Shown in pieces: positions 16,101-43,392 of a stretch of 64,000 nucleotides of DNA. The translations under genes were made by a program, and so were the position numbers. Source of the stretch: Takakia lepidozioides. Its lineage: Eukaryota; Plantae; Bryophyta. The notes under the pieces were generated by a model, which saw only the letters and a list, made by a program, of their open reading frames with translations, searched no databases and was not told where the DNA came from. The stretch is taken from contig CM060731.1 of assembly GCA_030704615.1 (NCBI GenBank), forward strand, positions 77,996,001 to 78,060,000, read 5' to 3'. The first letter of the stretch is position 1, and every line of letters starts with the position of its first letter.

Positions 16101-17631
16101 GCTCTCATGAAAGCTCTAGCTCCAAGGAACAGGGGTTGAATACCTTTGATATTTCTACATTTTGTCTTGCAGAAATTTTTCGCATCGCCAGTTGATGTCA
16201 GGATTGTAAAGTACGAACCAGAGAGGTCCAAGGATCACAAGATTCGTTGGAGACTGGATAACATTGAAAACAACATGTGATGCTTGATCTTTAAGCTTCA
16301 CTTCAAGTGGTCGAGTTTCATGATCAACATCTCCTGATGCTAACGGTCGTCCATCGATGACTTCAACGGGGGCCGAGAGTTTCTTCTTTACTAGCGTTAA
16401 ATTGTGTTGCTTCGCAAAGTTTTTGTTAATAAAACTTGCTGAAGCCCTTGAGTCCAAAAGTGCATCAACAGATATATCTCGATTTTGCGCTCTGATTTTT
16501 ACCGGAACTGTGAAGCAAGGTTCAGGGTCTGGAATTATAAAGAAATTTTTTTTCGGTGAGGAATTTGTGGTGTTCAGCCGCATGGTCCATATTATGACTG
16601 GATATCTTCGTTTCCGACCTCCTCGTATCGAACACTTGAGTTGCGCCCCGAGTTTTGAATCTTCTCTTGTTGGGGCAGTTAAATGTTATGTGATCTTCTT
16701 CTCCGTAATAGAGGCATAATCCATTTGAACGTCGTCTTTGTTTTTCTTGTGGCGTCAATGGCTTGAATCGGACAGCATCAATCTGCATAAGATCACTACC
16801 GGATGTCTGATGGATCATTGTGTTTGGTGCCGTAATAGCAGCGGCATGATGCGTCAACAACCATCTAGATCGTTTCTCTTGACGTCTTTCGAACAAACGA
16901 TTATCGTATGCAATGACTTGGGTGATGAATTCGCTTAATGTGCTCGCGTTTGGCATTGTCAGCAACAAATCTTTTACATCATGTTTTAGCCCACATCGAA
17001 ACTGACTAATAAGGCTCTTTTCATTTCAGTAGAGGTCGCACGCAAGTTGTCGAAATTCGGCATCATAAACGAAAGAAGGACGTGCTCATTATAAAAGATT
17101 TCGCATCTTTGTCTCTGCAACTCTCTCTCTATCATTCTCTCCAAACATTGCAGTGAACTCGGACATGAACGCTTCAAAATTGTATAGTAAATGCGATTTT
17201 TTCTTCTTCTAATAACGGTGTAAATCAAGATAGGGCAGTGCTTTATAGAAGGGTGCCCACGAATCCCACTTGAATACCTTCATCGGGGTAGCGTTATAGA
17301 TGTAGTCGTATGAACATTCGTATTTGTTGAACAAAACCGCAAAATCTTAATCTCGTCCCATCAAATTTCTCGGGCATGCTGATATTTGATCTCTCGTAAT
17401 TTGTTGAAGAGGAACCGTTGCAGTAGGAGCTGGTGCAGTAGGGACTCGTATGGTTGAAGATCCATTGTTCGACTCTTTTAAGTCTGAAATTTGTTGTTGC
17501 AAATTGTAGAGAATGTTGCCAAGATCTTGAGACTGATCAGCTTGTAATTGGGCGGTAGAGGTACGAAGTTCTTGCATCTGGAGCTGAAGACTCTACAATG
17601 TGGCCACCATTTCCGCAAATGTGTCTTCCAT
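13130..17631 (-). pseudogene. gag-pol (Gag zinc knuckle, protease, RT, RNase H, integrase, chromodomain)
   Basis: CLYYGEEDHITFNCP knuckle, ALLDSRAS protease, [11 protein letters not shown] and YLDD RT, LEADASNFVLGAILSQ RNase H, LSMDFITDLP / HPQTDGQTERVN integrase, EYEVDEVLDSR chromodomain. Many frameshifts. Confidence 0.95.
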
Positions 17632-18268: not shown

Positions 18269-18808
18269 AAACATACATATGATTATGTCTATGTGTACAC
18301 TTCAAAAAAGTAGTGTATTCATGGATGAAGGCACGGTATACCGTGCTATGTCACGTGGCATCGCGCCACGCTGCGCTGGACCACGTAACACTGTTTTTTT
18401 TTAAAAAGTTAATTAGTATGTATGATATATGTATTTTTTTATATACAATAAAAACATGATATGTACACATATGTAGTTAATAGCTATATTGGTTAATGTG
18501 TAGTGTAGTAGAAGTGATATTCAAGTGGTCAAAGCTTTATCCTCCACATACAATTAGATAAATTACTATGACTAATAAGATATGAATGATTAGCATATGG
18601 GAGCTCTAGGTGATCGACATGTGGTTAAAATAAATAATTTTTTAAAATAAAGAATGCCACATGGCGCGGCGCGGCCCGTCATGTGCAGTAGGAATTGTTT
18701 TGAAAAAATACTTAAAACATATATTTTTAAAAAAAAACTTGATGAGTTGCGCATCGCTTGGTGCAACAATTTGAATATTAATTTATTCTCTATTCATGAT
18801 ACTAATGT

Positions 18809-20570
18809 TTGACCCTTCAACTCATGGTTTTGGACGAAGTATCTCTCATTGGCAACATAATGCTTACGTTTGCATACATGAAATTAAGGTCAATCGAACG
18901 CATATACTATCATTTTTTTGGAAACCTAGATGTCATCATTACTAGAGATTTTCATCAAGCACCACATGTGAGAGAAATAAATGTAGGACCAGCTTCATTA
19001 GCTCAAAAAATTTGGCATGATTTTATTACATGTTATGACCTAAACCAAATTATGCGTCAATCAGATACCCAGTTCATAGATATATTGAATCGATTAAGAA
19101 CAGCCACACAAACATAAGATGATATACATGTTATTAACAATCAGTGTTGTCGTCCACCATCTAACAATTCTACATTTCCATATTTGTATTATACGAACAA
19201 AGAAATGTTAAGGCACAATGAAAAAATATTCAAACAAACAATCGGACAAATCTATATATTTCAAGCTGTTGATAAACATCACGATATATGCCTTTCTAAT
19301 TTCAAATTGCTGGATAATGCCAATTCCACAACGGGTTTGCATACAACGATTCATATTAAGAAAGATAGGTTAGTAGAATTGTGCGCATGAAATTATGCAA
19401 CACATGATGGACTTGTGAACGGAGCCGATGGAATTTTTAAACATTTCTCTGTTTTGTCAAATTCAACTATTTTAATATGGATCCAACTTAATAACCCGAA
19501 ATCAGGAATTGCTACGTGTGCATTATATATATATAATCAAGAGGATATAAAAACCATGCCAAATTGTTCGTTATGGACGCCAATCCAACCAGTTTCAAAA
19601 GAAATACAAATATGATCTAATACAAAACATATCATCACCAGAACCCAATTTCCAATTCAATTGGCTTCTGCTCGAACTATCCATTGTTCCCAATTATTAA
19701 CTTTGGATTATTTAGCGTTCGACCCTAAGGGTATAAAAAAAACATGGTTTAACATACACACACTTTCGCGCATTCGACCAAAAACAAATTTACATCTTAT
19801 CACACCTTTGCAATCAAACAATTTGCATGTTGATAATGGCGTTGCCGACGAAATGCAACGGTTTCATACTTCTGCTCGTTGGCAACTATTAATTCCCATT
19901 CTCATGTTATAGATAATCAAACATCATTGTGCAATCTTTGAACACTAGATCGTTGTCGTTACATAAAGAGGATGTTTTTTCCAACTTTAATATACAATAA
20001 TCTCATACAATGTGCTTTAAGGAAACTCACTTCAATCCAACAAATTCAAACATTGAATTGTTCTTTAATACTACATTGTACTCTTATCTAGCGGTTCATG
20101 CAAGCCATGAAATACTTGTATTATACGACCATACTATGTCATTAGCATCAAATCAAATACTTTCAAATGAAGGTGCTAAATATATAGCTGCACCATTTAA
20201 TTTGAATACCAGGAAAACAATTCACATAATTGCGGTCCATAAACCTCCAACACTACAATTAACTATTTTTTATCTTCTCTCAAAAAGTTCATTGATAATA
20301 TCCTACAAACATGTCCAACAATAATAATAGGGGATTTTAATGTAGATCTTTTACAAAATAATACCATAACAACAAATCAATTGTAAAAGTTCATGTCTTT
20401 TTTTCACATGCAACTACAATTCTCAATTAGTACTACTATCTATGGATCTCAACTAGACCATGTTTGGACAAATGCACCTCATCAACACTGCAATATCTGG
20501 CATTACAGAATCATAATATGGGACGGACCATAAACCTATATTTTTTGCTTTTAAATTACCTAATTACATT
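18809..20570 (+). pseudogene. Helentron PIF1-like helicase followed by an EEP/AP-endonuclease domain
   Basis: Helicase motifs LMVLDEVSLIG, FFGNLDVIITRDFHQAPHV, IMRQSD..FIDILNRLR, GLVNGADG, RTQFPIQLASARTIHCSQ. Then EEP motifs SLNTRSL, CFKETH, IIGDFNVD, SQLDHVWTN, TDHKPI. Confidence 0.9.
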
Positions 20571-21247: not shown

Positions 21248-21383
21248 TAATCCAAAATTGTAAGCTTTAATGCATTGTTGTTACCAAATATAGCATTTTT
21301 TTCCATATTTAATAATTATTTACAATTATTTATCAGATGTCCAGATTTCACACTTTTGTCCACATTTACTTAAAATGGTGTTT

Positions 21384-22105
21384 ATTGTTTGAAATGCCAC
21401 CTTTTCATGCGGAAGGTCTTGGAATTTGGAGCTATTTTATGTGTCTGGTGTCTAGGACCATTGATTCTTCATATTTGGAGGTTCATTTTTTTGCAACATT
21501 ATATCAAATTATCGTTAAATTAGATTTTTTTAATATTTATATTTTAATTCCACATACTTTTTCTTTTCTTAAAACATATTGCTTATAATGGGTCCTCCGA
21601 ATGCCGAAGGTCCATCATGGGATTAATTTCCACACAAGATTCGGAAAAGATTCCTATATGATCTGAGACTTTCTTAATTTACTTCAGGTTTGTCGTGTGT
21701 CCTTTATACGATTTTTCTGGGATTTTTGATGTACCTGCTTTCTATATATTGTTTGAAATGCCACTTTTTAATGCGGAAGGTCTTGGAATTTGGAGCTCTA
21801 TTATGTGTATGGTGTCTAGGGCCACTGAACCTGAGATTCACTTTCTTACAACATTATATCAAATTATCGTTGAATTGGATTTATTTTTTGTGTTTCTATT
21901 TAAATTTCCACCTCTATGTATAAATTTTTTTTAAACGAATTATTTTTAATGAGACCTTCGAATGCCGAAGGTCCATCATGGGGTTAATTTTCCCAGAAGA
22001 TTCGTAGAAGATTCCTAGAAAATTGTTATGATCTGAGATTTTTTTAATTTACTTCAGGTTCGTCGTTTGTCCTTATACGTTTTTTTCTATATACCTGCTT
22101 TCTAT
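21384..22105 (+). repeat. Tandem duplication, 2 copies of a ~345-360 bp unit
   Basis: TTGTTTGAAATGCCAC...GCGGAAGGTCTTGGAATTTGGAGC at ~21385 and ~21749; ATGCCGAAGGTCCATCATGG at 21601 and 21962. Confidence 0.9.
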
Positions 22106-23709
22106 GGAATTTCGCATTCTTGAAATATTATATATATTTATTGTAGAACTGTTTGTTATTTTTTTTATAAATTACTTTTTATATTTAATTGTCATATGTA
22201 ATAAATATATTTACTAATCACTTTTATTAAATAGATATTATTTTGAAAGTGTATTACTGGTTCATTATTATTTTGATTTTTCCTCATTTTCGTCGCCACA
22301 TGTGTTGTGGGTCACATCCGCCATCAAGAGGATGTCACATTTAATTCCGCGGATTCAATTTCCTAATTGATTGTGGGCCGGTGGGAAAGGATATATTAAG
22401 CACTTGTTGCCCTACCTTATCCAGAGGGACCAACCCCACTTTTTCTGCTTACCTTACGTAGAGAAATGTGATGTCTCTAAATCATGTTATGCTCTAGGAA
22501 GCAAATGTAACCCTACTAGTACTGTGTCAGGAGAGCAGAGTTTTGGAGGTGGCTATCAGAAATGTGGTGGCCATGTTTGTTCTCGAGAAATGGATGAGGT
22601 GATGTTAACTTTTTCACTTTGTATAATTATCTTTTACCCCTGCTCTGTTGTTAGAGCAGCCTATAGTTTAGGGCTTCTTTGCCCGTCTTGAGCACCTGGA
22701 GAAGGCCGCTGGAGTAGTCCGCGTTGTGCGTATATGCGAGTATATGTGAGTTTGGTTGCAAAGGCGTTGAGCATCGACGGAGTTGTTTTTGTTCTTTCTC
22801 GTTATGTGCACTTTTGCTTTTGCGAGTTTGTTTGAAGTCCTTGAGTATCGCAGCTGATGAACTTTTTTGTCATAAGCTGCACGGTTGCTTTTTAAGTTTG
22901 CTTCTCGTAAGCTACACGTTAGAGGTTGCGTTTCTAGGTTTGCTTTCTTCGTTTGCTACTCCTAAGCATCTCACTGCAGCTTGTTTTGCTTTCTATATTT
23001 GCTTTCTAGGTTTGCTACAGCTCGTTTTGTTTTTGCTTATTTGGGTCTGTCATGCGGACACAAGTTAGAGAGAGAGTGCAAAAGTGTTGAGGGAGAGAAC
23101 CACAGATAGAATGTAGAAGAATGATGAAACATAATAAGGTGGGAGATGCACTCACATCTTTACTTAGCCACTGGTGAGAATGAAGTCTTTTACCAATTCT
23201 ATGCGTTCTTCCTCCTTGTTTGGCATGCTTGGTTTTTTCTATATGCTTGCTACTCCACTTCTGAATAGTACTGAATCCTTAAGATGGGTCCTTTGTTTAC
23301 TATTTCATAAAACTCCGAGAGCCTAACCGAATGCGTTCTACTAAGCCACAGTAGTTGTTTTACTTTTTCGTTTGTTTATGCTTGCTTCTGGGCTTTGATT
23401 GTGTGCAGGATGCAGAGGGGGGCGAGAATTTCTCCCTCTTGTCAGACGAAGGCCTTAGCAACCTCCTGGAGAGAACGGACATCCTGCAAAATTCTTTGAT
23501 TCTATTTCCAATTCCAGATGATGGTGAGCATGGAACAATGGAGGAAGACGAGGACCTGTACTCCTTACGTCGATCGAGCGTTGTTGCCGACGACAAGTGA
23601 GCTGGGGCTGGTACATCTGGCGGCTCCGTCAAAGAAGGGCATCGCGGGTGGGAAGGGGGTACAGTAACAACAGTCGGACTCAGAGGTTCAATGTTTTGCG
23701 GCTCCCTGA

Positions 23710-25489
23710 AGCAACTTGTCATCAGGCCCAATGTGATTGTGCAGTATAGCCCTGGAGCTTCTGTGACGGTTTATACGATGGACTTGACATAAGTACAAAT
23801 AGCGAAATGGCATAGAAAGATAGTCCGTCACCTGAAACCACCACGTCTCTTTGGACAACCACTTGTCCATAATCTTGTTGGTGATTTTCCCATCAGTTTC
23901 TGGAAAGTGGGCTTCTGTCTACTGGGCAAGTGGTGCAATATGAAGCTTCAACCACCGCTGCTTCTCCTATGGGGATACTTCGGAAGTTGCAATTAGGTAC
24001 GTTCTCTCCAATCCCACTCTCCCCCCCCCCCCCTCCTGGCAAGTCTGTAGGGTTGGCAGAAACTCTGAGCCATTGGCTAGATCGCAAATGGGCAGCTTTT
24101 TGGCCATTTGCTTGGATCAGGCCTTTGCTTTAGGCAACATTTTTAGCTGCAACAATGGCAATGGCCATTCCCTCGCGGTTCCTCTCTTCTTCAGGGGTTT
24201 CCGCTTGATACCTGATCTTTGCTTGTGCAATTGCCTTCATTATGTCCCCATACATGCAAATCAACCAATCTTTATAAGCATCCTTCTTATGCATATACAT
24301 ATGTGATTCCAACCGACCGGAAAGCCACAAAGGTGAAAGGGTAGGGGGTACTTACATGGGCTAGAATCTCGATCATAGCCTCTTGTGCCATGGTATACCA
24401 TGTCTTCCCTGGTTCCTTCGCCAAAGACTTGTCATAGTGGCGTTTGGTGAGGAGCCCTTTGTATCGCTCCAAAGGGCTTGGGCCGATCATTTGGATGTAC
24501 CAGAGCTTGTGAATATCATCGGTCTTCACGAACCGCTTCTCATTAATGCTGCAAACAAGACACGTAATTCGTATTAGTTTTCATCTACAATCATGTTGAA
24601 TGTACATTTGGAATTCCATTTCATTTCATGTCAATGTTAATTCAACAAGCAGATTAGTTGCATTACGCATTTGTTTGGAACATGGCAGCTTTGAGCATGC
24701 CGATAGTGCTGGGCTGGCATCGCAAATTCTTGGCTTGCACTCACACATGCCATGGTTTGTAATTTGTCGTCAAGGTGTTGATGAGCTTCAACCAAGTGTG
24801 CAAGCGGTGGTTACCATCCACACGTAGAACATCCAATTCTTCAACCATGCCCAATTTGCATCCGCTTCACAATTTGCATCAAACTCGTTGCTAACATGTT
24901 GCCAGTGTGCACTCCACCCTCCTTAGATCTCATCCGTCACCAACGCGGGATTTTCCAGCTCTTCTATAGGGGCCAAAAAGAAGTATCCACGACCTTCCAC
25001 ATATTACCCATTTGTTAAGAAATACTCTCTCAATGCATCCCCTGCATTCTCCCCAACTATTGGCCTACTTTTGGGATTCAATATCATTTTGCAAATAGGC
25101 GCAATTGGAGGCAGGGTGGGTTTAGTAATTGCCAGTTTATTCACAACGGACTGCAGGTTTTCAGCATTGTGATCATGAAGGACCTGTAACTACTTCATAG
25201 CATCAACCTGCTCCAACTGTTCATCTGTTAAAGAAGCAAGCGCTTGAGGGTTAGGAGGCCCCCGCCCCCCCCCTTTCCTAATCATTGTACAAGGAATGGG
25301 TTGTTGTTGTTTCTCTAAGGAGTGTATGATGGAAATAGGTTGTTGTAGAGGCTATGGACCTGTTCCTAAAGATCAGAGCAGATACAGATGAGGGGGGTAC
25401 ACATGCATTGGAGCAGTGGATTCTGGAATGGAAAATGAAGGCGTACAAAAAATTATTCAATCCGGAGATCGAGTCCCATCGCTGGACAT
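23710..25489 (-). pseudogene. ParB/Srx-like domain protein, spliced, decayed
   Basis: Minus-strand translation ...GDALREYFLTNG*YVEGRGYFFL...WMFYV(W)DGNHRLHTWLKLI..., with DGNHR at 24804-24818. Phase-consistent intron at ~24549-24666. C-to-T-type stops and frameshifts. Breaks off after ...WWFQVTD...PDDKLLQ. Confidence 0.65.
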
Positions 25490-26589
25490 TGCTACTGTCC
25501 AACGAATCAGGCGGACCTCGTGCTGCAAAAAGATTGTTGTACATGTGCCATCTAACCACACTCACCTACTTTTGTAAAATTATTTTTGCAATTAGACTAG
25601 TACTTACATTCCCCTGCAATTTCCATACAGCCAGTGCCCAAAGTAAGATATTGGAATCACATATATAAACCTTTCAAGAACATTATAAGCTGCAAGCACG
25701 CTCAGAGATTCCAAATTAGAGGTTTGATTGTAAGCACATGATATGGCCGTAATGTCAACTGTAGCAGTCTATATTTGGGAGATCAAGATACTTGATTCAA
25801 GTGAAAATTTGATTGCAAATTTAGTGCAAGGCCAATTAACATATGATATCCTAAATTGGGTGACCTCAGGTGTTTGTAACATCTCAGCACCCAGATGACA
25901 CAATTCAGGTTCAAAAGTCTTAGAACGGTTGAAGGTGTTCTAGTGCTAGAGTCTTCAAAAGAAGTCTATGGTGACCACCAACTTCTCTTATTCTTTGACG
26001 CATCTGGAAAACCATGCTCTGGAAGTCTAGTAAGCTGCTTATAATTGCAAAACATGTGAGCTTTGCATCCGTAAATCAGTCCAGAACTCTTGGCCTAGAT
26101 GGGAGGGACTATGTACAACGTATACTTTACAATGGTGATGGCGGCACATGAGATTGTACTAGATTGTGTATATGACTAAGTTGTAAGTTCTAGATTGTAG
26201 CTAGAGATGCATCCAGGTACTGGGACCAGGGGGATGTAAGCTTTATTCACGACCTGATAATTTGGGCTCGTCTTGTCCTCGGAAGGAGGTTGATTGGGCA
26301 CATATTTGCGCATGATTGAGCTGGAAAAAGCATACTCGGTGAACTTTGAGGATGCTAGCTAGGATTGTACATAATGGATTGTTTGCTGCAAAATTATCTG
26401 GGTTGTTGGAGCGTCTGTCTGGCTCTGCCTGCCCTCCCCCTCATACATGTAGCTCTTGGCAAGATGGTGCGTTTACTATGGCCTCTGCTCCCTCAATGCT
26501 CGGTATGGCTTGCCAAAAACCACGGCAACAAAATACCCGTATCCTCAAATCGTAATGGACTTTCGTTAGGCATAGGCGGGTCACAGAAA

Positions 26590-27355
26590 CCATACCCTGT
26601 GGCGTCACCCACCTTCGTTGGACGCTGCCTATAAACTGTTTTTGGATTGGCAGAAAATAGATTAATTTATCTATTTTTTTAATTTTTGATCTCTAGTTGA
26701 GGTTTCCGATACTATACTTGATTTATAAGTAGTTTGATTTACAACAACCTCACGACTTCACCCACCTTCGGTGGACGTAGGTGGGTCTTTGGCAGGCCCT
26801 ACCATCTGATCAGATTGGGAGGAGTTGGTAAAAAATTAAGTTTCCATTTTAATTATTTTGTTTTTGTGGGTGAGGGCCTTGTCTTGTCTTGTCACTGTCT
26901 TCAGTGGGCATAGGTCCATCCTTGAAAGGCCGAGGCCCCTCAAATTGCAATTTCAAGGGCAATATGGTCAGACTGGCAGCGAATTAGAACAATTTTTCTT
27001 TTTCCTATTACTTGTTTGTCTTTCAAGAGTTTGTGGTTGACATTTCGACCCTCCTGTTTTGTCCCCCCTCCTTCGGTGGACATAGGTTGGTCCTTGACAG
27101 ACCCACATATATGGTCAGATAGGTAGTAATTTAGAAAACATTAATTTACTTTTTTATGTCTTGGTTTCTTTCAGGCTTTACGATAGAGGTTTTTGACCGG
27201 TTGAGTAGAATAATTATATAGTCGAGTAGGCAGAAAAGTATAATATTTTTTTTAAAAAAAAATCTTTTGTTTTCCCTTTCAGTGTTTGAGGTTAAGGTTT
27301 TCGACAATACACCCCCCTGTCTCATCACCCACCTTCGGTGCACGTAGGGTGGTCC
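26590..27355. repeat. Repeat region with four CACCCACCTTCG-N5-CGTAGGTGGG-type dyads
   Basis: Dyads at ~26606 (half), 26760, 27068 and 27326; 26590-26830 aligns with 36121-36370. Confidence 0.8.
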
Positions 27356-27502
27356 CTGGGTCCATGATATGTGGTTTAAGTCCATTTGATATCCTTCTTA
27401 TCCACCCCCATTTTGACCTTTGTATGTCTTTATAATTAAGTGTTATTAACCACACATGGTTTCTTAGGGTTACTTGCACAAATTTAAGTGTTTGTGATCA
27501 AG

Positions 27503-28102
27503 TTACCAAAAGAGGAGTTATCCAAGGTAGCCGCGACTAACGCATTTGTGTAACAAATTTGACGGGGAGTACGTCAAGCTAAAGAGAAGCTGATGGTTGC
27601 CCAAAATCGCCAAAAGCAGTATGCAAATGCACGTCGACGGGATGAGGAGTTTGCAGTTGGGGATCAAGTGTGGTTGCCTACAATCAATTTACACATCATT
27701 GGATCGCGAAAACTAAGGGCACGATTCATTGGTTTTTTTTCGATCATTAAACGCATTGGAGCAGTAACATACAAGCTGGAGTTACCACCACATATGAAGA
27801 TCCACCCGATGTTTCACGTTTCTCTACTACGTCGTTACGAACCTCGACCATCGATATTCAAAGATAATCAAGAACCACAACCTTTACCAGAGTTGATAGA
27901 CCGAAATGAAGAGTGGGAGGTCGACCGTGTTCTGAAAAAATGCGCATACAAACGAGGACGACATAAGGTGTTGGAGTATTTGGTTTTATGGAAAGCATTT
28001 CCATTATATGAAGCTACCTGGGAACCGGTGCAAAATCTCACAAATGCTCAATTGGCAATTCAAGCTTTTGAAAATTCGAACAACGAGGACGTTGCTTCTT
28101 GA
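27503..28102 (+). pseudogene. Inverted integrase C-terminus (GPY/F region) plus chromodomain
   Basis: AQNRQKQYANARRR..FAVGDQVWL, IHPMFHVSLL, EWEVDRVL..EYLVLWK..ATWEP. Followed by PPT GAAAGAGGGGAGGA at 28101-28114. Confidence 0.92.
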
Positions 28103-28115
28103 AAGAGGGGAGGAT

Positions 28116-28552
28116 TGTAACAAGGTAGAATCTAGAAGGTTCTAGATGGAGGAGGAAAGTTCCCTAGAAGTTTCCAGAATAATTAGGAAGGATCCTAAGA
28201 AGTTTGACTTAATGAAGTTTGACTTGAGGCTCTAAAGTCAAACCTCTAAGATATTCATATTATGGAGAGTAGGTCAAATCTTTGATAAAATCATATTGTA
28301 GAGAATATGTCAAACCTAGGAAGGTTGACTTTAACAAGTATCTTTGATAAAGTCGTATTGTAGAGAATATGTCAAACCTAATAAGGTTGACTTTAGGAAG
28401 CTTTGACTTGAGGCTCTCAAGTCAAACATTTAAAATAATTATATTGTGAAGGGTATATAAACCTGCAATGAAAGCCTAAAAGGCATCGAGTTGTTTTGGG
28501 AAAAAATTGAGAAGTACTTCTATTCTAGTTTGTATAGATCATGGGTGTTACA
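28116..28552 (+). repeat. 3' LTR (inverted relative to the element body)
   Basis: TGTAACAAGG...GGGTGTTACA is the reverse complement of 33949-34369; internal ~61-bp duplication. Confidence 0.95.
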
Positions 28553-29371
28553 GGAATACTCATTCCACACAGGGACATGACCAGCCTCAAAGCCTACCGC
28601 AGGATCAACCGGATCAACAACATGTTCGTCTAGAAGCTCGCAAAAAAAATGTCAACGTTTTCAGGAAGACCCGGTTTCTCACGATTTATAGATGATTCAG
28701 TCTCCACAGCATTAAAGAACTTGTACAATGAGACAAGTAATGTCTCCCTCTTTCCAGTTCTACAAAGGTTTGTCAATGTCTCCAAGTCCCCCTGTAAACA
28801 CATCACATTCGAAGCTGATGCGGCTGTAAAAGAACCAATGTACCTTGCCGACCAAACAATCTTGTCGCTGCTACTCCCACTATGACTTCTTTTCTTCTTG
28901 AGCTGCTCCCCATCATTTGCACTTCCTGCAACGTTAGAGTCTCCACGATCAGAGTCAGTGATCGCTTTCTCTCCCGCGTTCATCCCCTTCATTGTAATGT
29001 ACTGTCTCCTTTTGTTTTTTGCTATGGCTGCTTCTGCAACTTTAATCCTTTCATCCTCCAAAGCAACTGCAGTTTTCGTGGCCTCTTTCTGCCGGAAGGA
29101 TCACTTTGTTGCCCGAGCATCGGGCTGCAATCCATGATTCTCATCACCCACATTAGGCTACTCCTGGGCAATTTTTTCTCTCTCTCTTTCTCCTGGAGGA
29201 CCGTCAAATGTTAGGGGGGTAGTCCAGATACCACGGACACAATTCAACATGAAGTGGGTTCATCTTTGCAGTCTAATCTCCAACGAATATAGTGTTTTCT
29301 CATTTACAGTAGTTGTCCACGCCTCGGCCACAGAGGGAAGGTTATCTTTCTCATAGATCTCAAGAAAATAC
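28553..29371 (-). pseudogene. Inverted middle exon of the N4/N6 DNA methyltransferase-like gene
   Basis: After an AG acceptor: YFLEIYEKDNLP...ELCPWYL...ENVDIFF(C)ELLDEH...GHVPVWNEYS. It reads in frame across the TSD into 34375. Confidence 0.7.
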
Positions 29372-29387
29372 CTACATAAACCACTTC

Positions 29388-32300
29388 GTAAGAGTTGTTG
29401 GCACATTTGGGTGTTCACCATACATAAAAAAAAAATGAGTTTCTTTCGTTGACGCGTTGACCGAGTTATTGTATGAAAATTCTACCAATGGTAATAACCA
29501 ATCCCACTCTTCTTGTTTTTCTAATGTAAAGGCCCGCAATATGTCTTCAATTGTACGATTCGCTCTGTCTGTCTGTCCATCTGACTTCGGATGATAGGCT
29601 ATTGACATAGCTAATTTGGTTTTAAAAAAACCAAATAAGCTTTTCCAAAACAAACTAGTAAATTGGGTACCCTTGTCAGTTATGAAAACTTTAGATAGCC
29701 CATGATGAGAATAGACCGCTTCCAGATATAGTCGAGCTAGTTCATGTGCAGTGACGGATTTTTTAGTGGGACGGATGTTTATCATTTTACTCAATTTATC
29801 TGCAAAGACCACTATAGTGTCGTATCCCGATGAGGTTTGAGGTAACTCACAAACTAAATCCATGCTCATATGTTCCCAACGTCTGTTTGGTACTGGTAGT
29901 GGTTGTAAAAGACCTGCTGCTGGCTTGCGGTTTGTTGACTTGTTTTGTTGACATTTCATGCAACTTCGAACGTACGCCTCCACCTCATCTCGCATCCGTG
30001 GCCAATAAAATGTTCGTTTTAATTGTTCGAATGTTTTTTCAACTTCAACATGTCCTGCTATCGCCGTATCATGAGCTTCAAACAAGACTTCTGTCTTCAA
30101 TGCATGTTCATCAGGGATCCAAAGTTTACCTTCCTTGAATACCAATCCTCAAATTTCTGTCACTTTGTCATTCTTCTTAGCGTCCACGATCTCCCCATCA
30201 TCTTTAGAAGCCGTCGCTATCTTGTTCCACCAATCGGGTTGAATGTTGATTTCTGTCAATGTGTTAATGCGCGACATTCTTGTCATTGCATCCGTCAATT
30301 GTCGTTTTTCCTCCACATAAACGATCTTCATGTTACATTGTTGTCGTCACTCCGCCCAACGAATCTGTCTCTTCGATAGATCTTTCTGTGTCTCCAAGTA
30401 CACCAACGGTTTATGGTCTGTCTCCACTATGAACTCTTTATCTCCAAGATAGTGCTTCCAATGTTTTGTACCCAAAACAATGGCTAATTCTTCTCGTTCG
30501 GTTATTTGGTAATTTTGTTCCGCAGGTAACAATTTGCGAGAAAAATATGTCACTGGGTGCCATCCGTCTTCCCATTCTTGTTGTAACACCCCACCCACTA
30601 CTGAGCCTAACACATCTACCGAGAGCTTGATTAGTCTTGTTGGATCATACCATTTCAAGATCGGGGCATGAAGCAACGCATCCTTCAAGGCCTGAAATGC
30701 TAACTCCTCTTCTGTACCCCACTTCCATCTAATTCCTTTGCCCAAAAGATTTGTCAATGGTTGGGCAATATTTGAGAATGCCCGTACAAATCGTCTGTAG
30801 AATCCGGTAAGGCCAAGAAAACTCCTTAATTGGGTAATGTCTTCAGGGGCTATCCACTGCTGAATAACTTCTATTTTCTCACTCATTACCTCAATTCTCT
30901 TCCTACTCATGCGATGCCCAAGATAATCTACTTCTTGTTTTCCAAACTCACATTTAGATGTTTTGGCATATAGCTGATTCTCACGGAGAACTTGTAATAC
31001 TTGTTTGAGGTGGTTTCTATGCTCGACAAGGCTGTTACTGTAGATCAAAATATCATCTAAAAAGACTATCACAAATCTATCTAAGAATGGACGGAATATA
31101 TCATTCATGAGGCCCATGAATGTGGCTGGGGCATTGGTGAGACCAAATGACATAACCATGTATTCAAAATGTCCATACGTAGTGCGAAAAGCGGTTTTAT
31201 ATACATCTTCATCAGCGACTCGAATTTGATTGTATCCACTCCTCAGATCAAGCTTCGTAAAGTATTTTGCTCCTCGCAGTTGGTTAAATAGATCGTCCAT
31301 GCGTGATAACGGATACTTGTTCTTCACTGTCTGCTGGTTGAGTGCTCGATAATCAATGCACATGCGCATTGCTCTATCTTTTTTCTTCACTAACAACACC
31401 AGCGCTCCATACGGGGATACACTTGGTCTTATAAAACCTTTTGATAATAGGTCCTCAACTTGAGCTTACATTCTTCCAACTCGTTTGGTGCTAATCGATA
31501 AATGACTTTACAAGAAGAAGTATTACTTGGAACAACCTCAATCTTATGATCTACTCTTCTCTTTGGCGGAAACCGTGCTGGTAGGTCATCTGGAAAGACA
31601 TCTTTGAACTCTTTCAATACACTCTGTAATTCTATAGGGACCTCACTCATGTCTTTTTTCGGATTTTCCACGTCTCTTATTAAACCTACAAATAATAATT
31701 CTTTCTTACATATAGCTGTAGTACCTATAACAAATGATGGTAGGTTTCGATATAGTGTCCTCACTCGATCTCCCTATATTTTTCCAATTCTGGGTTTTGA
31801 CTATCTTTCGACGCCAATCAACATCAGGGTTGTGAGATTCCATCCAAGACATGCCTAATATTACGTCATATCGAGCCAGTCTGACCACTCGTCATTCTAA
31901 GATTTCTCTATATTTACCAATTGACAACTCTATGTTTTTAGGTAGTGTCTCAATGGCCTCTGTATGTCCATTTGGCATTTCTACTTCCTCTCTTTCATCA
32001 TTTTCTAAGGGGAGTCATAGTTTCAAGGTAGCCTTTCTAGATAAGAAATTTTCTGCTGCCCCAAGGTCTATTAACACTCTCACATAAATACCTTCCAAGG
32101 TTCCATCTGCCACAATTAACTGCGTCTCTTTCTTGCCCGCATGATTGATTTGTCTCTTCTCCTTGTAGGGCCCCTCGCCTTTCCTCTTCTTTGTAGAACC
32201 AGTAAGACCGCGAAGTCTACTTACTGGTTGTCATCGTTTTCCTGCTCATTGTGATGTTCGTTATCTTCTCCTTTTCTTAAGAGGTCTTCGATAAGTTTTG

Positions 32301-33296
32301 TCGATTGTACCTTCCACTTCGGCAGTTGGCTGCAAGATGTCCGTATTTTCCACAGTTGTAACATTGTCTAGTTTCCCTTTGTCCTTCTATTCGTGGGAAT
32401 GTTGAGGAGGTCACATCTTTGTCATTCAATTTCATTCGCCGCTTTGGGTTATCTTCCCCATATCTGATTCCCGGCCTATTTCTTTGAGAGTATTGGAAGT
32501 TATCCCGTCTTCGAAGATTTCCAAGCTGTATAGGCGTTGGTCCGTATTGGTTCAATGGAACGTGTATACCTTCGTCGTATTTTGGTAGCATCCCTTCAAT
32601 CTTTTGGGCCAATGAAATTGCTTCGTGGACATCAACCGGGTTGAGTAAAATTACTTCTCCTTGAATTTTCTTCTTCAATCATCTTTTGAAGTTGTCTAAA
32701 GCTTCTGCAGGACTCATGTCTTCGATTTGGACCTGAAGATTAAAAAAATCTTCAATGTAATTTTGCACACTCTCACGTTGTTCCAAATTCCATAATTTTA
32801 TTCGAGCAGTTGTAACAGCATCTACTGCCTTGAATTGTTGGAGCAGTTCCGCTTTCAAGGTGCTCCATAGTAAATGTTCTCTTTTTGCAATCTGTCTTCT
32901 CTCCCATGTCTGTAACCATGTTGAAGCATTGTCGAGTAGAAAAGATCGTATGAACATTCCGTGGTCCAAATCACTTGATGTAGGGAAATATGACAGATGT
33001 ATTTCCATTTGATAAATCCATCTTTCTAGTACTCCCATGACGCGACTTCATTTATACGGCTTGACCTTGCACAACTTGGTCATTTTTTGCAGTAACGTAT
33101 CCGACCCATCAGCAACCAGTCCCGGGGCGGTTGATTGTTTCACTTGTTTAAGCTCCTCCATCAACACGTTGTTTTGTTGTTGGGTCATGACAAGAGCATT
33201 CTGCAATTCATATAAGCGCTCCATTATCCACACCGTCTGATCATTGGCTTGATGAGTAGTGTGTGCATTGTCCACCATTTCTTCATTGTCCGCCAT
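29388..33296 (-). pseudogene. gag-pol of the second chromovirus
   Basis: CYNCGKYGHLAANC knuckle, VLIDLGAA protease, [10 protein letters not shown] / FLDD RT, RNase H, HMSMDLV and YHPKSDGQ integrase. Truncated at the inversion breakpoint. Confidence 0.95.
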
Positions 33297-33948
33297 CTTG
33301 CTCCACTACTCCTTCCTTCGTGGTGTTTGTCTTCTAAAATTAATGTATACTATCTCTATTCTCTTATCCTAACACAGTATGTAAATAGTGCAATCCCAAA
33401 CCATCCCGTATGTGACTATTGGTAATACAAAAAGGACGTTTGAACTCATGACAAGGTTCATGAATTCTACCCCAAATTTTGCAACTAAAAATCTCACAAG
33501 ATGATGTTTATCAATGACGCGTACATTGATACTAAATATATTTGGCGGTGGAAAATTAGGCGGAAAATGTCTACCTCGATCCATGAGCTATGTATATACA
33601 CATATGTATACCTTCCAATTTCTAATTATAGGAAAGACGACATGTCGTGGGTTTTGTAACACTTCTTAATATTGTTCCTCTCCAAATCTTTGTACTATCA
33701 TATCTCTAATTTCTGCTTTACGACGACATATAATTTTAAACTCACACTCCGAAAGAAAATCACAGAAATGTGGTTGATTTAAGTCCATAAATTTTTTATA
33801 CTATCGTTATGATGCACCATCACTACTATCTATTCAACATTTAAAAATATTAACGACAAAAATCTCTAAAAAAAAAAACATCTCAATCGAATCCTCCTAA
33901 AGAATGTATTCACTCCCAACTTTAAGAAAGATTAGGTTCTGATACCAT

Positions 33949-34369
33949 TGTACACCCATGATCTACACAAACTAGAATAGAAGTACTTCTCAACTTTTTC
34001 CCAAAACAACTCGATGCCTTCTAGGCTTTCATCGCAGGTTTATATACCCTTCACAATATTATTATTTTAAAGGTTTGACTTTAGAGCCTCAAGTCAAAGC
34101 TTTTTAAAGTCAACCTTCCTAGGTTTGACATATTCTCTACAATACGACTTTATCAAAGATACTTGCTAAAGTCAACCTTCCTAGGTTTGACATATTCTCT
34201 ACAATATGACTTTATCAAAGATTTGACATACTCTCCATAATATGAATATCTTAGAGGTTTGACTGGAGAGCCTTAAGTCAAACTTCTTAGGATCATTCCT
34301 AATTATTCTGAAAACTTCTAGGGAACTTTCCTCCTCCATCTAGAACCTTCTAGATTCTATCTTGTTACA
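33949..34369 (-). repeat. 5' LTR of the second chromovirus
   Basis: TG...CA ends, adjacent Met PBS, flanked by ATTCC (minus-strand GGAAT) at 34370-34374. Confidence 0.95.
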
Positions 34370-35473
34370 ATTCCCATGAGAACATGCTCAATGCATTTGA
34401 CATTGTTTACGATTTCATTGAGGACAACAGATGTTTTATTCTGATTGTCCCAACCGATCTCCGTACGATAATTCGTAGGCACACCGAAAAAAAGGAGATG
34501 ACGATGTTCAAGACTTTGACATGCATCGATGACAGAGACTTGAGATGCAATACGGGAAATGTAATCACTTTTGCTATTCCTTGCAAAATTTTGGATATTA
34601 TTTTATAACTGTTCCAAATCTAATCCTTTCATATGTTCCTGCACTGATGCTATTCTTCAACGTCCATTGTTTGGTGCTCGCGAGTTGCACACAATTTGAA
34701 ATCAGTGACCAAGTGTTTCTCCGCTGATATGTTGCGACATTTTCTACCTTCATCTGAGATGACAATGTCACCAAATGATTATCCTTATAGAGGTCGCAAA
34801 GAGAAATCCCCCGCATTCTACGAGACAATCATGGAGCTATGTTCAGCTGAGGAGGCTAAAGTTATGGATTTGTCTGCTTTGGAAAATAACATTAATTCAT
34901 GTATTTATACATGTCTCTTTTGTAATTAGACTACTATTAAGTATGTCAAGGTTTTGCATATGCTTTGCTTTAACTGGAAACGGGTTATCGTATATTGGCC
35001 GAGTTAGTTGATGTTGTAGGAAACTCGGTGAAAGCCGCAATTACATCCGGCAGATACATCATTGCAATGGAGAGTGATTTTGAGCTGTTCGATGACATTT
35101 AAATGAAGCCAATGATGGACACTGGCCCGAAGAGAAGACGACCTCCTGGGCCACCTACTAGAAGGTTTGCAGTGAAGTATGTGGACACATCAGATGGCGA
35201 TGGTGATATGTGAGTGAGTCATCTCACAAACCTTCTTTGAATATTAGTCAGTTTCTCGGGTTATTATAATTATAATTATTATTATAAATGAGTTTGACTG
35301 CGTGGTTGCATTTGTGCAGGCACACAAATGTGAGGAGGCAGAAGTGGGATTTGCGTGCCTACGCCGCTGACATACCCATGATCCCACAACAGTTTCCGAT
35401 GCTCCCAATCTACGCAGAGGCTGAGACCGAAAGACAGACATCATCAATACGAGAAAATGAGTGGGATGACTAG
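34370..35473 (+). pseudogene. Class-beta N4/N6 DNA methyltransferase-like C-terminal exons
   Basis: YRGRKEKSPAFYETIMELCSAEEAKVMDLSA / GNSVKAAITSGRYIIAMESDFELF parallels HPTQKP..L...I...S..GD.VLDPFAGSGTT..AA..LGR..IGIE.D of beta-class amino-MTases. Introns and stops present. Confidence 0.7.
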
Positions 35474-36120: not shown

Positions 36121-36490
36121 CCATATCCTGTGGAGTGACCCACCTTTGGTTGGTGGACGAAGGTGGCTCCTATATTGCCTATAATGTTTTCGTATAGGCA
36201 AAAAAATATTAATTTATCAAATTGTTTTATACTTGATCTATGGTTGATGTTTCCGACCCTATCCCTGATATATAAGTATTTTGCTTTATAACAACCTCAT
36301 AAGTTCACCCACCTTCGGTGGACATAGGTGGGTCTTTGGCATGCCATAACATATGGTCAGATTGGCATTAATTGAGATTTTTTTTATTTTTTTATTTTTT
36401 TTTCTTATTATTATTATTATTATTTTTCCGCAAACCGGCCCGTGTTCTACAACTGCGGAGGATACCTCCTTCGTTGGCCGTAGGTGCTTT
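36121..36490. repeat. Second copy of the dyad-bearing repeat
   Basis: Dyads at ~36138, 36306 and 36464; aligns with 26590-26830. Confidence 0.8.
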
Positions 36491-38622: not shown

Positions 38623-41600
38623 ATGGAAGGATGTCATGAGGATGATGCTTCTCACAAACAGAGGCCACCGTACACTGAGATTTGTCCAAAGTCACCCTCT
38701 TCTGGTCTGCAAGTGATGCTGGATGAAGAGGAAACTGGACTTGATTCAAGTGAGCATGGAATAAGTGAACCCGGGCCTCTTAGTGCAAAGGATAGTGGGT
38801 CTGATACTGATCTGCCCTGTATGAGCCGCGGAATTGAGCAGCCGATATTAAATCTTCATTTGCAGTATACATCAATTTCTCAGACGAACAGGCAATCAGA
38901 CTGTGTTGATCCAGCACAAAAAGCAAATATTATCTTGTTGGTGGAAAGCGAGGAAGAGAAATTTGGCTTAAGGATCACCTGTGCGAACCATGTTGGTGAT
39001 GTTGGTTTGAGCGATGATACATTGGCTGGTGGATTGGAAGGAGACAACAATGTCAACAACTTGCCAGAGCCCGAGTTTGTCACAAATGAAATTGATGAGA
39101 AGATGGGGGCCACAGTTGGTGGTGAGGACAGAATTGGCGAAGGCAATGGTGATGCTGGTGGGACAGATGAAGAACAGGAAGAAGAGGAAAGCGGAACTGA
39201 GAGTTACTATCTCTATGACGAGGATGATGAAAAAAATCCCATTGATGGCAACGAGTGTCCTTCCAAGGTTGGGCCACATGGTGTTGGTAGCGTTGGACCT
39301 GCAGATGGCAGGAGCAGTGAGGCCGAGAGCCAGGATGTCGATGGTAACTTTGATGAGGATGGCGATGATATTGATGTGAGGGATAATGGTGACATAGATA
39401 TCATTCTTGAGATCGCACAGGAGGTAAAGCAAGAATGCAGCAACGACAGTCCTGACAGTCTGGAAGTGAAAATAAGCAAGGACTTGCAAGGTAAATAGTT
39501 GGCATCTCTCTCTCTCTCTCCAAATGTAACATATTTCTTTTCTCGTATTCTTTTCTTGTTGTTCTGCTTTGTCCAATTTGCCATGAGGGCCTCCTGTGGA
39601 TGTCATAAACTTTCCTCCTTTCTCTGTCCAAGAAATCACATCATACAGTTGTGAGAAGGAAATGCAGCATCAATTGTGTGTCGCAAAGAAAGACTAAATG
39701 GTAGCCTTTTGAGAAAGAAGAACGTATAAGCCCAACTTGCTGCACGCTTCCAGACATGGTGACCTAACTGTGCTTGGCTGGAGTTGGAGCCAGTTGTGTG
39801 AATATCTATGTTGAAGATTGTTATCATGATAACAGTCTCATTAAGGAAATGGAGACTGACTCAGTTTTCAGTTGAATACCCTATGTTGTTAGGTGGAGGG
39901 GATTCCAAGTACGGGTATGGAGCTGTGTTGCACAGAATTGCAAACAATGGCATGGCTGAGCCCCACAAAAACAAGGCCAAGAGTGCACAAGAAGGAAACT
40001 TCAATGAACTGTGGGAGGATGAATGCATGAGGTACTTGGAACGAGAGCCTGATTTTCGAGCAAGACTACAATATGAGATGCGAGTAGTTTTGATATCACC
40101 ATTGTTTGAAATTGCGGGCCAGAGTGCTTCAGCATTTTCTGGGCTTTACGAGAAGAAATTCAAGAAACCAGTGGAGACCACAGGCTTCAGCTCAGCTGCA
40201 AGGCTGTGTCGAGCAATGCCCAATGTAGTGCAGAGGGGGTTGCTTCATGACGAAGGAAAGTTACACTTGGTGGACTCTCCAAAGAATCATCGTGTAATAG
40301 CAGGAATCCGTTCAGGTCTGCGACGGATTGTGTACGACATCCTCCGGTCACGTCCGCAAGGCCTTGGCTTTGAGGAAATGGAAGAGCACTGCTCACGGTG
40401 GTGTGGGCAGCCCTTTTGTGATGTTCTCTCTGACCATGGGTACCAAATGCCAGTTATAGAATGCATGCTTCGTGACATGCCTGACATAGCTTACCTTGAT
40501 GATGCTGGACTAGATACCCGGGTTTATCTCTCCAAGAGAGCTGAGGATCCAGCTCTCACAGATGGACTACTGATTGGCCTGGCTGAGAGAAACTTTTCAC
40601 GGTTGAGCCAACAAACGTCCGTCATGGGTGAGGACAATTCAACACGATTTAATCAATCTGTATATGCCCCTCACTGGGCAAGAGGTAACTCTCTGGGGCG
40701 AGCAGAAAATGCAACTTCTAACATGACCATCAATGTCACCGACATGGCAATGGGTGATACGGCAGGTTTGGATTCAGATTCCTTGCCCTTTCTAACTTGT
40801 ATGTGGCAACTAATGAAGTGATGGCATCGTGTTGATTTACTGTCAACCATCAGTCATAGCTAGTTCAAGATGTTAAAACTTTGCTTTTTACTGTTTGAGC
40901 AGGAGGATGGCTTCGATTTTTATGAGCCTTATGTGTTCAGGAGCTTTACTGTAAGAATATAGGCACTGCTTGAACTGCTTGTCCGCTTGTCTTTTTGGTT
41001 GTGTTTGAAGTAAACCATTCACTGCATTCTGCTGCAACTAGCTGCAGGATTGCCTATGTTATGCTTGGATTAATGGGGATTGGGCACAGGTTCAAGAATT
41101 GGGCCTGCTGGTATGGCCCCCGAAGAGCTTGCAGACCTTCAAGTCCTATGCGCTGCCGAGACAGAATCATCCGATGCTTGTAAGAATGGATCCCTGTATT
41201 CTATAGAAGACACTTCCCCACAGGTGAGACTGCGCTTGAGATTACTGCTGGCCTTGCACAATGAAGGGCATGGAGCAGAAGTTTCAAAGCTAGAAGCAAT
41301 CTATGAGAAGATGTTCTCAACAACACTAGACCTTCAAACCTTGGGGTTTCCTTCGATTGAAGCACTAGCTAGATGCTGGGGGGATATCATGCTCCAGCAC
41401 AGTTCCCAGCCTGGGTGGGCATTTCCTGCTGAGACTGAAGAAAACAGACGAATCTTGAACACCGTGACCACGGGCCTCCGGTCAGCCATATTTGCAATCC
41501 TTTTAGCACGTTACCCAGATGGTCTGGACCCCCTTGAGCTTGTCCATTGCTTGGATCAAACACTCTCCGGGAAGCTCTGGGATGTGCTTAGGACCAATGG

Positions 41601-43392
41601 ATATGTGTTCAATGATTTACAGGCAACCCAAAAGCTATTGATGGACAAGGAGTCCGATTTTCAGTTGGCTGATTGTGGGGAGCTACGACTGCTGTTGCGG
41701 GACATGATTGACTTTGTGCGCCTGGGCTGTCGAGAGGATGGCTCCTTAATAGTGAAGCTACGGGATGGGGAGTTTCCACTTTTAGATCTGTTAGATTGTG
41801 ATGTAGCTGAGGAATTCTGCTGCAATGATCAAATAGTCTCCCCTGATACAAATTTACAGAGCCAGGTCATCCTTGATGCAAAGCAGGGCACCCCCATACA
41901 AGATACCAACAGCCAAATGGATGTGAGTGCTGGCCCAGTAAGAACCAACAGGTCTGGTTCAGAGACTGTGGCTGAGAACAAAACGGATTTGCATTTGAAA
42001 GCAAGTAGAGTGGAGGCAGATGGTTCTCTTGCAATGACACCTTCTCTGACTATAGCCCGCCATCACCACCAATCTCCCTCTAAAATGCTGAAACATGAGA
42101 CCCGGCTGATTTTGGGTTCAATTGAATACGTTGCACATGGTCTTGCAGTGCAAGACTTTTGTGCAGTTTATAGAGAAAGGACTGGGCACTTGCTCAATCC
42201 AGGTAAATTCAAGAATGTTAGGTCGCTTATGCAAGCAATGCCTGATGTGATCAACTTGAATTCTCTAGGGGCTGATTGCCTTGTGCTTTCAAGAACTGCT
42301 CAAAATCTTAGGGTGCTGTCAGCAACAAAGGCAGGGCTGCGTCAGGTCCTCTTTTGGGCATTGTTGAAAAACCCTGGGGGTATCTGGGCTGAGCTTCTTG
42401 AAGGCTGGTACCTGGATTTTGCGGGGTGTTCCCTGCCGAGCACCCTTGCTAGGAATGGTTATGGAAAATCAAAACGGGCACCACTGTCCCCCGTTATTCA
42501 GTTCTTGGAAGATATGGGCGATCTTCTGAAACTGCACTCGAGAGATCCTAGTATCTACATCTGGGCTGGAGGATTCGAGGACCCAGTCTTGACAGATGCC
42601 TCTCTGATTGGACTGCCTGCTGATATAATTCAATATGATCCGTTACATGAAGATTATGAAAATGCATGCAGTCATGCAGACTGTAGCCTGGAAATGACAC
42701 CAGTTGGTAGTCAACTGTGTGAGAGAGGTGGAGAGGAGAGGGATGAAGATGAAAGCCACAGTACAGTGCCTAACAAGTTGGAAGATGACAGTAATGCAGG
42801 CACTGAGACAGATGGGGAGTATACTGAGGGGGTTTTGAGGGCTGGAGTGGTTAGGACTCAGGAAATGGGTAAGGAAAATGACCCCTTTTACAGTTTAAGT
42901 GGCCAGCCTGAGATGGCAGGGAATGCCTCTGAAGACATTCTTTCTGACAATGTTGAGGCAAACACAGAGACAGGTGAGATAGGCAGCAAACCAACTAGAA
43001 GAGAATATGCAGTATTGCGATGCACAGTTACCCCCCATGTAAGGGAGGTGGATGAGAGCAGCTTTGCAAGCGGGAGTGGCCACTGGAGTAACAACCTAGA
43101 CTTTGAGAGTGAACTATGCCACTCCATTCATTATGCTGCAATTCGAGGTCAGGGGTCAGAACAGACTAGAGAGGATGGTTCTGTAGTTGAACCAGATGAG
43201 ACCAGTCCCTCTGCCACACCCCACTGTCCACTCCATTCTTTAGGAAATGACTTCACAACACTTGGCATCAAGGAAGAGGAGAGAGATGACTATACAGAGA
43301 GAGATAGACCTGAGCAGGTTTGCATGTCCGGCATGCCAGATCAACTGGGGGATGGGTGTATCACAGTTCAATCAATACCTGCCGGGGTCTGA
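38623..43392 (+). CDS. Multi-LOTUS (OST-HTH) domain protein, ~1347 aa; predicted exons 38623-39490, 39893-40765, 41090-43392
   Basis: Three long ORFs joined by phase-1 GT-AG introns. LOTUS-like motifs include YEKMFSTTLDLQTLGFPSIEALARCWGDI, YEKKFKKPVETTGFSSAARLCRAMPNVV and YRERTGHLLNPGKFKNVRSLMQAMPDVI. Acidic disordered termini. The 3' end could splice further at 43317. Confidence 0.8.

Follow-up and report, generated by a model that had tools for sequence, protein, structure and literature searches.

The 64-kb stretch of the Takakia lepidozioides genome analysed here (contig CM060731.1, positions 77,996,001 to 78,060,000; called the window below, with positions counted from its first letter) carries a host gene that was interrupted by a long terminal repeat (LTR) retrotransposon and is divided between the two strands by a small inversion. 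The gene was formerly spliced, with at least four exons, about 350 to 380 codons and a basic tail that resembles a nuclear localization signal (NLS). An earlier note on this DNA, made from the letters alone, had read it as a hidden, probably transposon-borne gene for a bacterial-type, class-beta DNA amino-methyltransferase, that is, a writer of N4-methylcytosine (4mC) or N6-methyladenine (6mA), or else for a catalytically divergent derivative. The present copy is, with near certainty, a pseudogene and not an active writer. Judged by profile and motif comparison, a weak resemblance to class-beta enzymes is confined to about the last 50 residues of its product; the part that would correspond to the S-adenosylmethionine (SAM)-binding half may be homologous to them.

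The inserted element is a Ty3/gypsy LTR retrotransposon of the chromovirus type and lies on the minus strand (Table 1). All features expected of this group were found, namely a TG..CA LTR pair, a 5-bp target-site duplication, reverse transcriptase (RT)/RNase H, an integrase with H2C2 and rve domains and a C-terminal chromodomain. In Pfam, the minus-strand open reading frame (ORF) at 29375-30145 matched Integrase_H2C2 (8e-22) and rve, and the plus strand at 27593-28099, directly 5' of the LTR at 28116-28552, matched SH3_Tf2-1 (PF24626, 8.6e-20) and Chromo (PF00385, 1.7e-12). The matches of the RT/RNase H ORF at 30350-31399 (minus) were proteins bearing RT/RNase H Pfam domains. Among them R1sor_017339 of Riccia sorocarpa reached 81% identity, with all others at or below 65% and the next-ranked at 56%, a likeness that, taken by itself, would point to a liverwort of the Ricciaceae type. 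Positions 28114-28548 and 33952-34371, the two arms of the LTR pair, form inverted repeats with 95 to 97% complementarity. Over 424 aligned bases the identity of the pair was 95.5%, giving a Jukes-Cantor distance of 0.046, which would correspond to roughly 2 to 3 million years at commonly assumed plant substitution rates, the rate itself being an assumption.

The two halves of the integrase are found on opposite strands, the N-terminal half on the minus and the C-terminal half on the plus strand, and joining position 29383 (minus) to 27498 (plus) brings both into one reading frame. In sister copies of the element elsewhere in the genome, the sequence AACTCTTACAAAGT precedes the equivalent of 27498, and the same sequence, with one base different, ends at 29383 (minus) in the copy studied here. 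We therefore place the inversion at 27498-29382, which also accounts for the forward orientation of the 3' LTR on the plus strand. One of its breakpoints lies inside the integrase and the other in host DNA about 0.8 kb upstream. Homologous recombination between two inverted copies of the element was considered as a cause and rejected, since it would have left two intact chimeric elements, whereas one of the breakpoints observed is host DNA. In public DNA runs, which probably stem from the same sample as the assembly, short-read unitigs crossed 28548/28553 and 29382/29383 with zero mismatches and extended 30 bases beyond 27497/27498. As they bridge the junctions, the rearrangement cannot be put down to an error of the long assembly, allowing for the probable common origin of the runs and the assembly. 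The split integrase, the LTR pair, the duplication and the unitigs thus bear out the proposal that an LTR insertion and an inversion divided a single gene. In the sequence of events that we propose, a chromovirus-type Ty3/gypsy element would have entered the largest exon of the gene and duplicated ATTCC; the 1,885-bp inversion would have followed, flipping the 5' part of the gene onto the other strand; and the in-frame TAA, possibly together with a one-base slip, would represent further damage.

When the element and the inversion are removed, by taking the reverse complement of 28553-29371 and joining it through the GGAAT duplication to 34375 as had been suggested, 110 codons can be read without a stop through the duplication (...VWNEYS/HENMLNAF...). 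On the sense strand, the restored 1.9 kb have three long frames free of stops, of 156, 110 and 93 codons. The sum of these three was reached in one of 3000 dinucleotide-matched simulations, and the real values overall were reached in 1 to 8 of 3000. The antisense strand also has two long frames, of 131 and 102 codons. In their peptides Cys, Phe, Ser and Leu are abundant, as is typical of a non-coding reverse strand, whereas the sense peptides are ordinary in composition, and the antisense frames were consequently rejected as the true gene.

The T8 run and the later-exon peptides named in the earlier note are present in the DNA. The one-base slip assumed within the T8 run is unnecessary, as a phase-0 intron of 71 nt (28707-28637), with the T8 tract upstream of its acceptor, joins ...YKFFNA/LLDEHV... 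equally well; with this intron the ...LPENVDIFF strand, the basis for reading a catalytic motif IV, is lost. The join DLSA/GNS proposed between two of the later exons had to be replaced: it offers no canonical splice pair and no usable donor, and the phase-compatible GT-AG pair is 34860/35004. Reading on past ...FELFDDI, the frame meets a TAA at 35100-35102 and is then open through the NLS-like PKRRRPPGPP and one further exon to 35473.

Unitig depth over the gene was about 30 to 40, equal to that of the unique flanks, compared to thousands for the retrotransposon, which shows that there is one copy of the gene when sequences with at least 95% identity are counted. A second copy of any of its pieces was not found within the window. 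No public RNA run containing the gene was found either, and two runs that we guessed to be RNA gave no match, which does not by itself prove silence. Because of the insertion, the inversion, the TAA in frame and the missing RNA match we regard the gene as dead. A hidden functional 4mC or 6mA writer is thus not what this locus holds, given the broken gene, the in-frame stop and the loss of both motif IV and the glycine loop described below. Pseudogenes disrupted by LTR insertions and small inversions are in themselves ordinary, and this copy cannot write 4mC or 6mA.

For the comparison with methyltransferases, a conceptual protein was assembled from the coordinates of the window and aligned with class-beta hidden Markov models (HMMs) of our own making. 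These were built from Escherichia coli YhdJ and 80 viral loci (relatives with 29 to 98% identity), which gave 46 non-redundant proteins, including eight true fusions of ParB with a methyltransferase. The sole local hhalign alignment paired QKP..LL..II...S..GD.VLDPF.GSGTT..A..GR..IGIE of the profile with EKSPAFYETIMELCSAEEAK-LVDVV-GNSVKAAITSGRYIIAMESD of the conceptual protein, i.e., the stretch from the helix of motif X through motif II. For this C-terminal part hhalign gave P = 0.012 with the join of the earlier note and P = 0.015 with the canonical join; in HMMER, the score obtained with the canonical join was reached by 27 of 3000 and by 107 of 3000 shuffled sequences. Exon E alone aligned to columns 224-242, from the tail of motif I to motif II, at a score reached by 7 to 15 of 2000 shuffles. 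Exon D alone aligned to columns 193-214, from the motif X helix to strand 1 and immediately N-terminal of the exon E alignment (189 of 2000 shuffles). Since the two exons were aligned separately, their adjacency and right order are independent of any chosen splice. Two further procedures contributed nothing: the global mode of hhalign aligned just 8 columns at an end, a meaningless result that was discarded, and very cheap gaps drove chained Smith-Waterman to the linear regime, where it told nothing, so that stricter gap settings alone were used.

Two hallmark motifs of the family were not recovered. Motif IV, (D/S/N)PP(Y/F/W), is absent, its position being occupied by CELL after the assumed +1 slip or spliced out with the 71-nt intron. 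The reading of motif IV as CEL(L/P) is not supported; the strand flanking it hinges on a frameshift that the intron explains equally well. The glycine loop of motif I, F-x-G-x-G, is likewise absent, since the canonical splice gives VDVV-GNS and the other join DLSA-GNS, each having a single glycine. From the last core strand to motif X the protein would have about 35 residues compared to about 95 in E. coli YhdJ, approximately 60 fewer. Regarding the motif order IV, X, I claimed for the gene, the X-I-II stretch aligned collinearly at the right place, though at P around 0.01 and without significance across the window; motif IV and the catalytic half did not.

A second, ParB-like gene of three exons lies on the minus strand at 24356-25189. 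Joined, its exons encode 165 residues that contain ...LDVLRVDGNHRLH... with a DGNHR motif, and an in-frame TAG is found upstream at 25193-25191. After the inversion is undone, this gene and the studied gene stand head-to-head, about 2 kb apart. A single polypeptide comprising both was rejected: the ParB-like exons are on the minus and the restored gene on the plus strand, which makes them two divergent genes. We favour two such genes over a former fusion because a single inversion explains the arrangement, and a fusion would have to reuse the 27497/27498 breakpoint. The same region contains a repeat unit of about 160 bp with the hairpin motif CCACCTTCGGTGGAC (CCACC-TTC-GGTGG; repeat CCACCTTCGGTGG). 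It was found at 26609, 26762, 27067, 27329 and 36309, five matches compared to 0.06 expected, all on the plus strand. Four diverged copies lie between the ParB-like and the studied gene and the fifth lies downstream, so that the restored gene is bracketed by them (26540-27420 and 36240-36400); the units at 26762 and 36309 agree to 82%. In the repeat units no tRNA-like part was found. The repeat is not a high-copy short interspersed element, since the one copy measured on reads had single-copy depth.

The idea that the gene was carried by a transposon was not upheld. Between 20 and 40 kb no terminal inverted repeat (TIR) pair was found, and the LTRs were the sole inverted-repeat pairs there; none of the large ORFs tested contained a transposase domain and no transposase-like stretch was seen among the others; and the depth is that of a single copy. 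A cargo gene of a Mutator-like element (MULE) was also considered and rejected: in the stretches checked, neither long TIRs nor a nearby MULE transposase were seen, and there was no sign of multiple copies.

Exon E, when compared with the 38,880 PHROG families, gave just two matches, and both were families annotated as DNA methyltransferase (E = 0.07 and 0.25). Other results of the profile and database comparisons were blank or count against a class-beta ancestry. The whole composite scored -1.3 bits against the 46-sequence HMM, and for the N-terminal 147 residues, the supposed motifs IV to VIII, 997 of 1000 shuffles scored at least as well as the real sequence against profile columns 1-140. 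This profile represents phage YhdJ/CcrM-like N6-adenine enzymes only and is little informative on the catalytic halves of the N4-cytosine (N4C) type. When the window was scanned in all six frames, exon E came only 14th among 2066 stop-free stretches, with E of about 19, and a P value near 0.01 does not survive selection, because the stretch had been picked by eye for its likeness to the motifs. The database searches were run on the separate stop-free pieces. No piece matched N6_N4_Mtase (PF01555) in Pfam, even at E <= 10, and none had a relevant or significant curated-profile match in Pfam, NCBIfam or PADLOC. The 63-residue exon had no true relative among 1.84 billion representative proteins, the parent collection of which includes at least one protein of Riccia sorocarpa; its only phmmer match there, a Cys-rich repeat protein with five weak stretches summed, was dismissed as an artefact. 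The ParB-like protein matched no Pfam family, and it resembled the ParB part of the phage fusions weakly, at scores reached by 21 to 69 of 1000 shuffles. In addition, a sequence search of the PDB with two pieces gave chance matches alone (E > 1), the 143-residue ORF had no match in a set of 5.8 billion proteins among those of 79 to 250 aa, the 63-residue exon reached a best score of 0.75 in the ESM Atlas, a low recognition, and it gave no tblastn match in phage records.

With these data we tentatively favour, short of an even chance, that the locus descends from a class-beta amino-methyltransferase-like gene and is degenerate, the SAM-binding half alone being still recognisable by its motif X helix, strand 1, the tail of motif I and motif II. 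With an unrecognisable catalytic half and neither motif IV nor the glycine loop left, the protein would then have been a non-catalytic derivative even when intact, and not a 4mC or 6mA writer. A serious competitor is that the gene was a lineage-restricted orphan, now a pseudogene and unrelated to methyltransferases, with the X-I-II motifs and the neighbouring DGNHR as chance matches picked by a motif-minded reader. The blank searches of Pfam, NCBIfam, PADLOC, PDB, ESM Atlas, the phage records and the large protein sets are what an orphan would give, as are the N-terminal half scoring below its shuffles, the unremarkable rank of exon E across the window, the missing motif IV and G-x-G loop and the spacer before motif X that is so much shorter than in YhdJ. 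Chance explains less readily, however, that two separate exons fall on adjacent, collinear profile positions, that both PHROG matches of exon E, out of so many families, are DNA methyltransferases, and that the gene has a ParB-like gene and hairpin repeats as neighbours.

A complete class-beta domain, in the order IV (as CELL), X and I, carried by a transposon and once fused to the ParB-like gene from which a second inversion displaced it, appears improbable. At the motif level, LPENVDIFF does resemble the strand before DPPY and W-x3-S...CFILIVP resembles motifs V-VI, and a Lys/Ala-rich stretch upstream recalls the linker of the phage ParB-methyltransferase proteins (profile columns 187-216, 1.3 bits). 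The catalytic half has no statistical support, however, and its motif IV strand requires a frameshift that the 71-nt intron can replace; one inversion accounts for the whole arrangement with divergent genes, whereas a fusion needs a further rearrangement at an already used breakpoint; and the failure to find a TIR pair in 20 to 40 kb or a transposase-like stretch, together with the single-copy depth, speaks against a transposon. Slightly less probable still is that there was never a gene and that the retrotransposon struck unique intergenic DNA with chance open frames. Neither a homologue nor RNA was found, GT and AG are frequent enough for phase-compatible pairs to be found easily, and the antisense strand also has long frames; against this stand the excess of long sense frames over the simulations, the 110 codons that stay open across the restored join and the difference in composition between the sense and antisense peptides. 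Returning to descent from a class-beta-like gene, if the C-terminal resemblance is real, the locus would be a diverged, non-catalytic and non-mobile relative of ParB/amino-methyltransferase-like genes. A wider proposal, which we consider rather unlikely, is that the locus represents a non-mobile and decayed copy of a eukaryotic module with three components, namely the ParB-like gene, the divergent class-beta amino-methyltransferase-like gene and the arrays of hairpin repeats between and beside them, and possibly kin to the source of the 4mC writers of Marchantia sperm.

The closest parallels to such a pair of genes are the ParB-like and class-beta fusions of phages and plasmids (PF02195 plus PF01555), exemplified here by the IMG/VR loci L038, L040, L043, L047, L054, L055, L058 and L068. 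After restoration, a ParB-like gene with DGxHR and a gene with X-I-II-like motifs lie within about 4 kb, and the C-terminal alignment of the studied gene with the fusions is collinear. In the fusions, however, both parts form one ORF, whereas here they are two spliced, divergent eukaryotic genes; the studied gene lacks DPPY/SPPY and F-x-G-x-G, and neither half is significant against the fusion profile. We found no report in the literature of ParB-linked amino-methyltransferase genes in land-plant transposons. With E. coli YhdJ (L001:3654-4535) and the CcrM-like N6-adenine enzymes, the stretch from the HPTQKP helix to GR.fIGiE aligns with EKSPAFYE...GRYIIAMESD, whereas the catalytic half of the studied gene stays unaligned and the spacer from the core to motif X is the shorter one noted above.

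To our knowledge, Marchantia is the one plant with class-beta N4C methyltransferases that are known to shape the sperm methylome. The two class-beta-like N4C methyltransferases of Marchantia polymorpha, MpDN4MT1a and MpDN4MT1b (Mp6g18330 and Mp6g18340), are sperm-specific, have TSPPY and write 4mC in sperm, and expression of DN4MT1 is high in late spermiogenesis (bioRxiv 10.1101/2021.02.12.428880). Compared by their published description, they have the permuted, class-beta type of motif order that the studied gene would share, but they have kept TSPPY and are highly expressed, whereas the studied locus is disrupted, lacks motif IV and matched no RNA run. The other known co-option is N4CMT of bdelloid rotifers, in which a bacterial-type PF01555 domain was domesticated as a spliced eukaryotic gene (PMC8885841). 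The studied gene would likewise be a spliced eukaryotic gene of bacterial type. N4CMT, in contrast, is intact, is active in E. coli and is fused to a chromodomain, whereas the chromodomain found here belongs to the integrase of the inserted element and not to the gene.

Table 1. Coordinates of the retrotransposon, the inversion, the host gene and the ParB-like gene in the window
Feature	Positions	Strand	Description	Basis
Ty3/gypsy chromovirus internal region	29383-33947	-	gag with zinc knuckle, protease, RT/RNase H, N-terminal half of integrase	ORFs and Pfam
5' LTR	33948-34369	-		inverted-repeat pairing, LTR identity
3' LTR	28116-28552	+	TGTAACA...TGTTACA	inverted-repeat pairs; 95.5% identity to the other LTR
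Integrase C-terminal part	27498-28102	+	SH3_Tf2-1 and chromodomain; two stops near the start	PF24626, PF00385, translation
Target-site duplication, copy 1	28553-28557		GGAAT on the plus strand, ATTCC on the gene strand	direct reading
Target-site duplication, copy 2	34370-34374		ATTCC on the plus strand	direct reading
Inverted segment	27498-29382		1,885 bp; carries the 5' host-gene part together with one duplication copy, the 3' LTR and the C-terminus of the integrase	
Host gene, 5' part	28553-29382	-	156-codon open frame 29100-28633, possible ATG near 28990, then 32 codons into the insertion site	frames; unitig depth
T8 run	28642-28649	-		direct reading; unitigs of two runs without gaps
Alternative intron	28637-28707	-	71 nt, GT...AG, phase 0 on both sides; removes the ...ENVDIFF strand	splice-site inspection
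Interrupted exon, continuation	34375-34560	+	HENMLNAF...RCNTGN; donor AAT/GTAATC	frame, splice sites
Intron	34560 to 34714		phase 0, 153 nt	GT-AG
Exon D	34714-34860	+	CFSADML...KEKSPAFYETIMELCSAEEAK; motif X-like helix; acceptor CCAAG/, phase 0	splice sites; HMM columns 193-214
Intron	34860 to 35004		phase 0, 143 nt; gives ...SAEEAK/LVDVVGNS...	GT-AG
Exon E/F	35004-35209	+	LVDVVGNSVKAAITSGRYIIAMESD..., then NLS-like PKRRRPPGPP; in-frame TAA 35100-35102	HMM columns 224-242; PHROG matches
Intron	35209 to 35320		phase 2, 110 nt	GT-AG
Last exon	35320-35473	+	phase-2 splice 35209/35320; stop codon 35471-35473	canonical splice
ParB-like gene	24356-25189	-	three exons, 25189-25008, 24864-24745 and 24548-24356	canonical GT-AG, fitting phases

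Other parts of the window contain further features. A second, decayed LTR-retrotransposon-like run with ORF fragments of gag, protease, RT and integrase lies at 13234-17577 (minus), and stop-ridden fragments at 18806-19909 (plus) resemble, as judged by eye, a Helitron/Pif1-type helicase (...LDEVSLIG...ITRDFHQAPHV...). At 21383-22160 a unit of about 360 bp is present in two to three tandem copies (direct-repeat families D3, D5, D6 and D9; 83 to 92% identity). Between 48000 and 56000 the G+C content rises to 52 to 56%, compared to about 40% elsewhere, with proline-rich overlapping ORFs on both strands; the ORFs of 290 and 500 aa in this region (52838-53710 and 53922-55424) matched no Pfam family. 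Three large ORFs of 291, 337 and 770 aa are found 3 kb downstream of the studied gene at 38623-43392 (plus), the last of which had one Pfam match, to OST-HTH/LOTUS (2.5e-07). Finally, an F-box ORF (PF00646, 8e-08) with a weak match to an At3g26010-like beta-propeller lies at 62318-63139 (minus).

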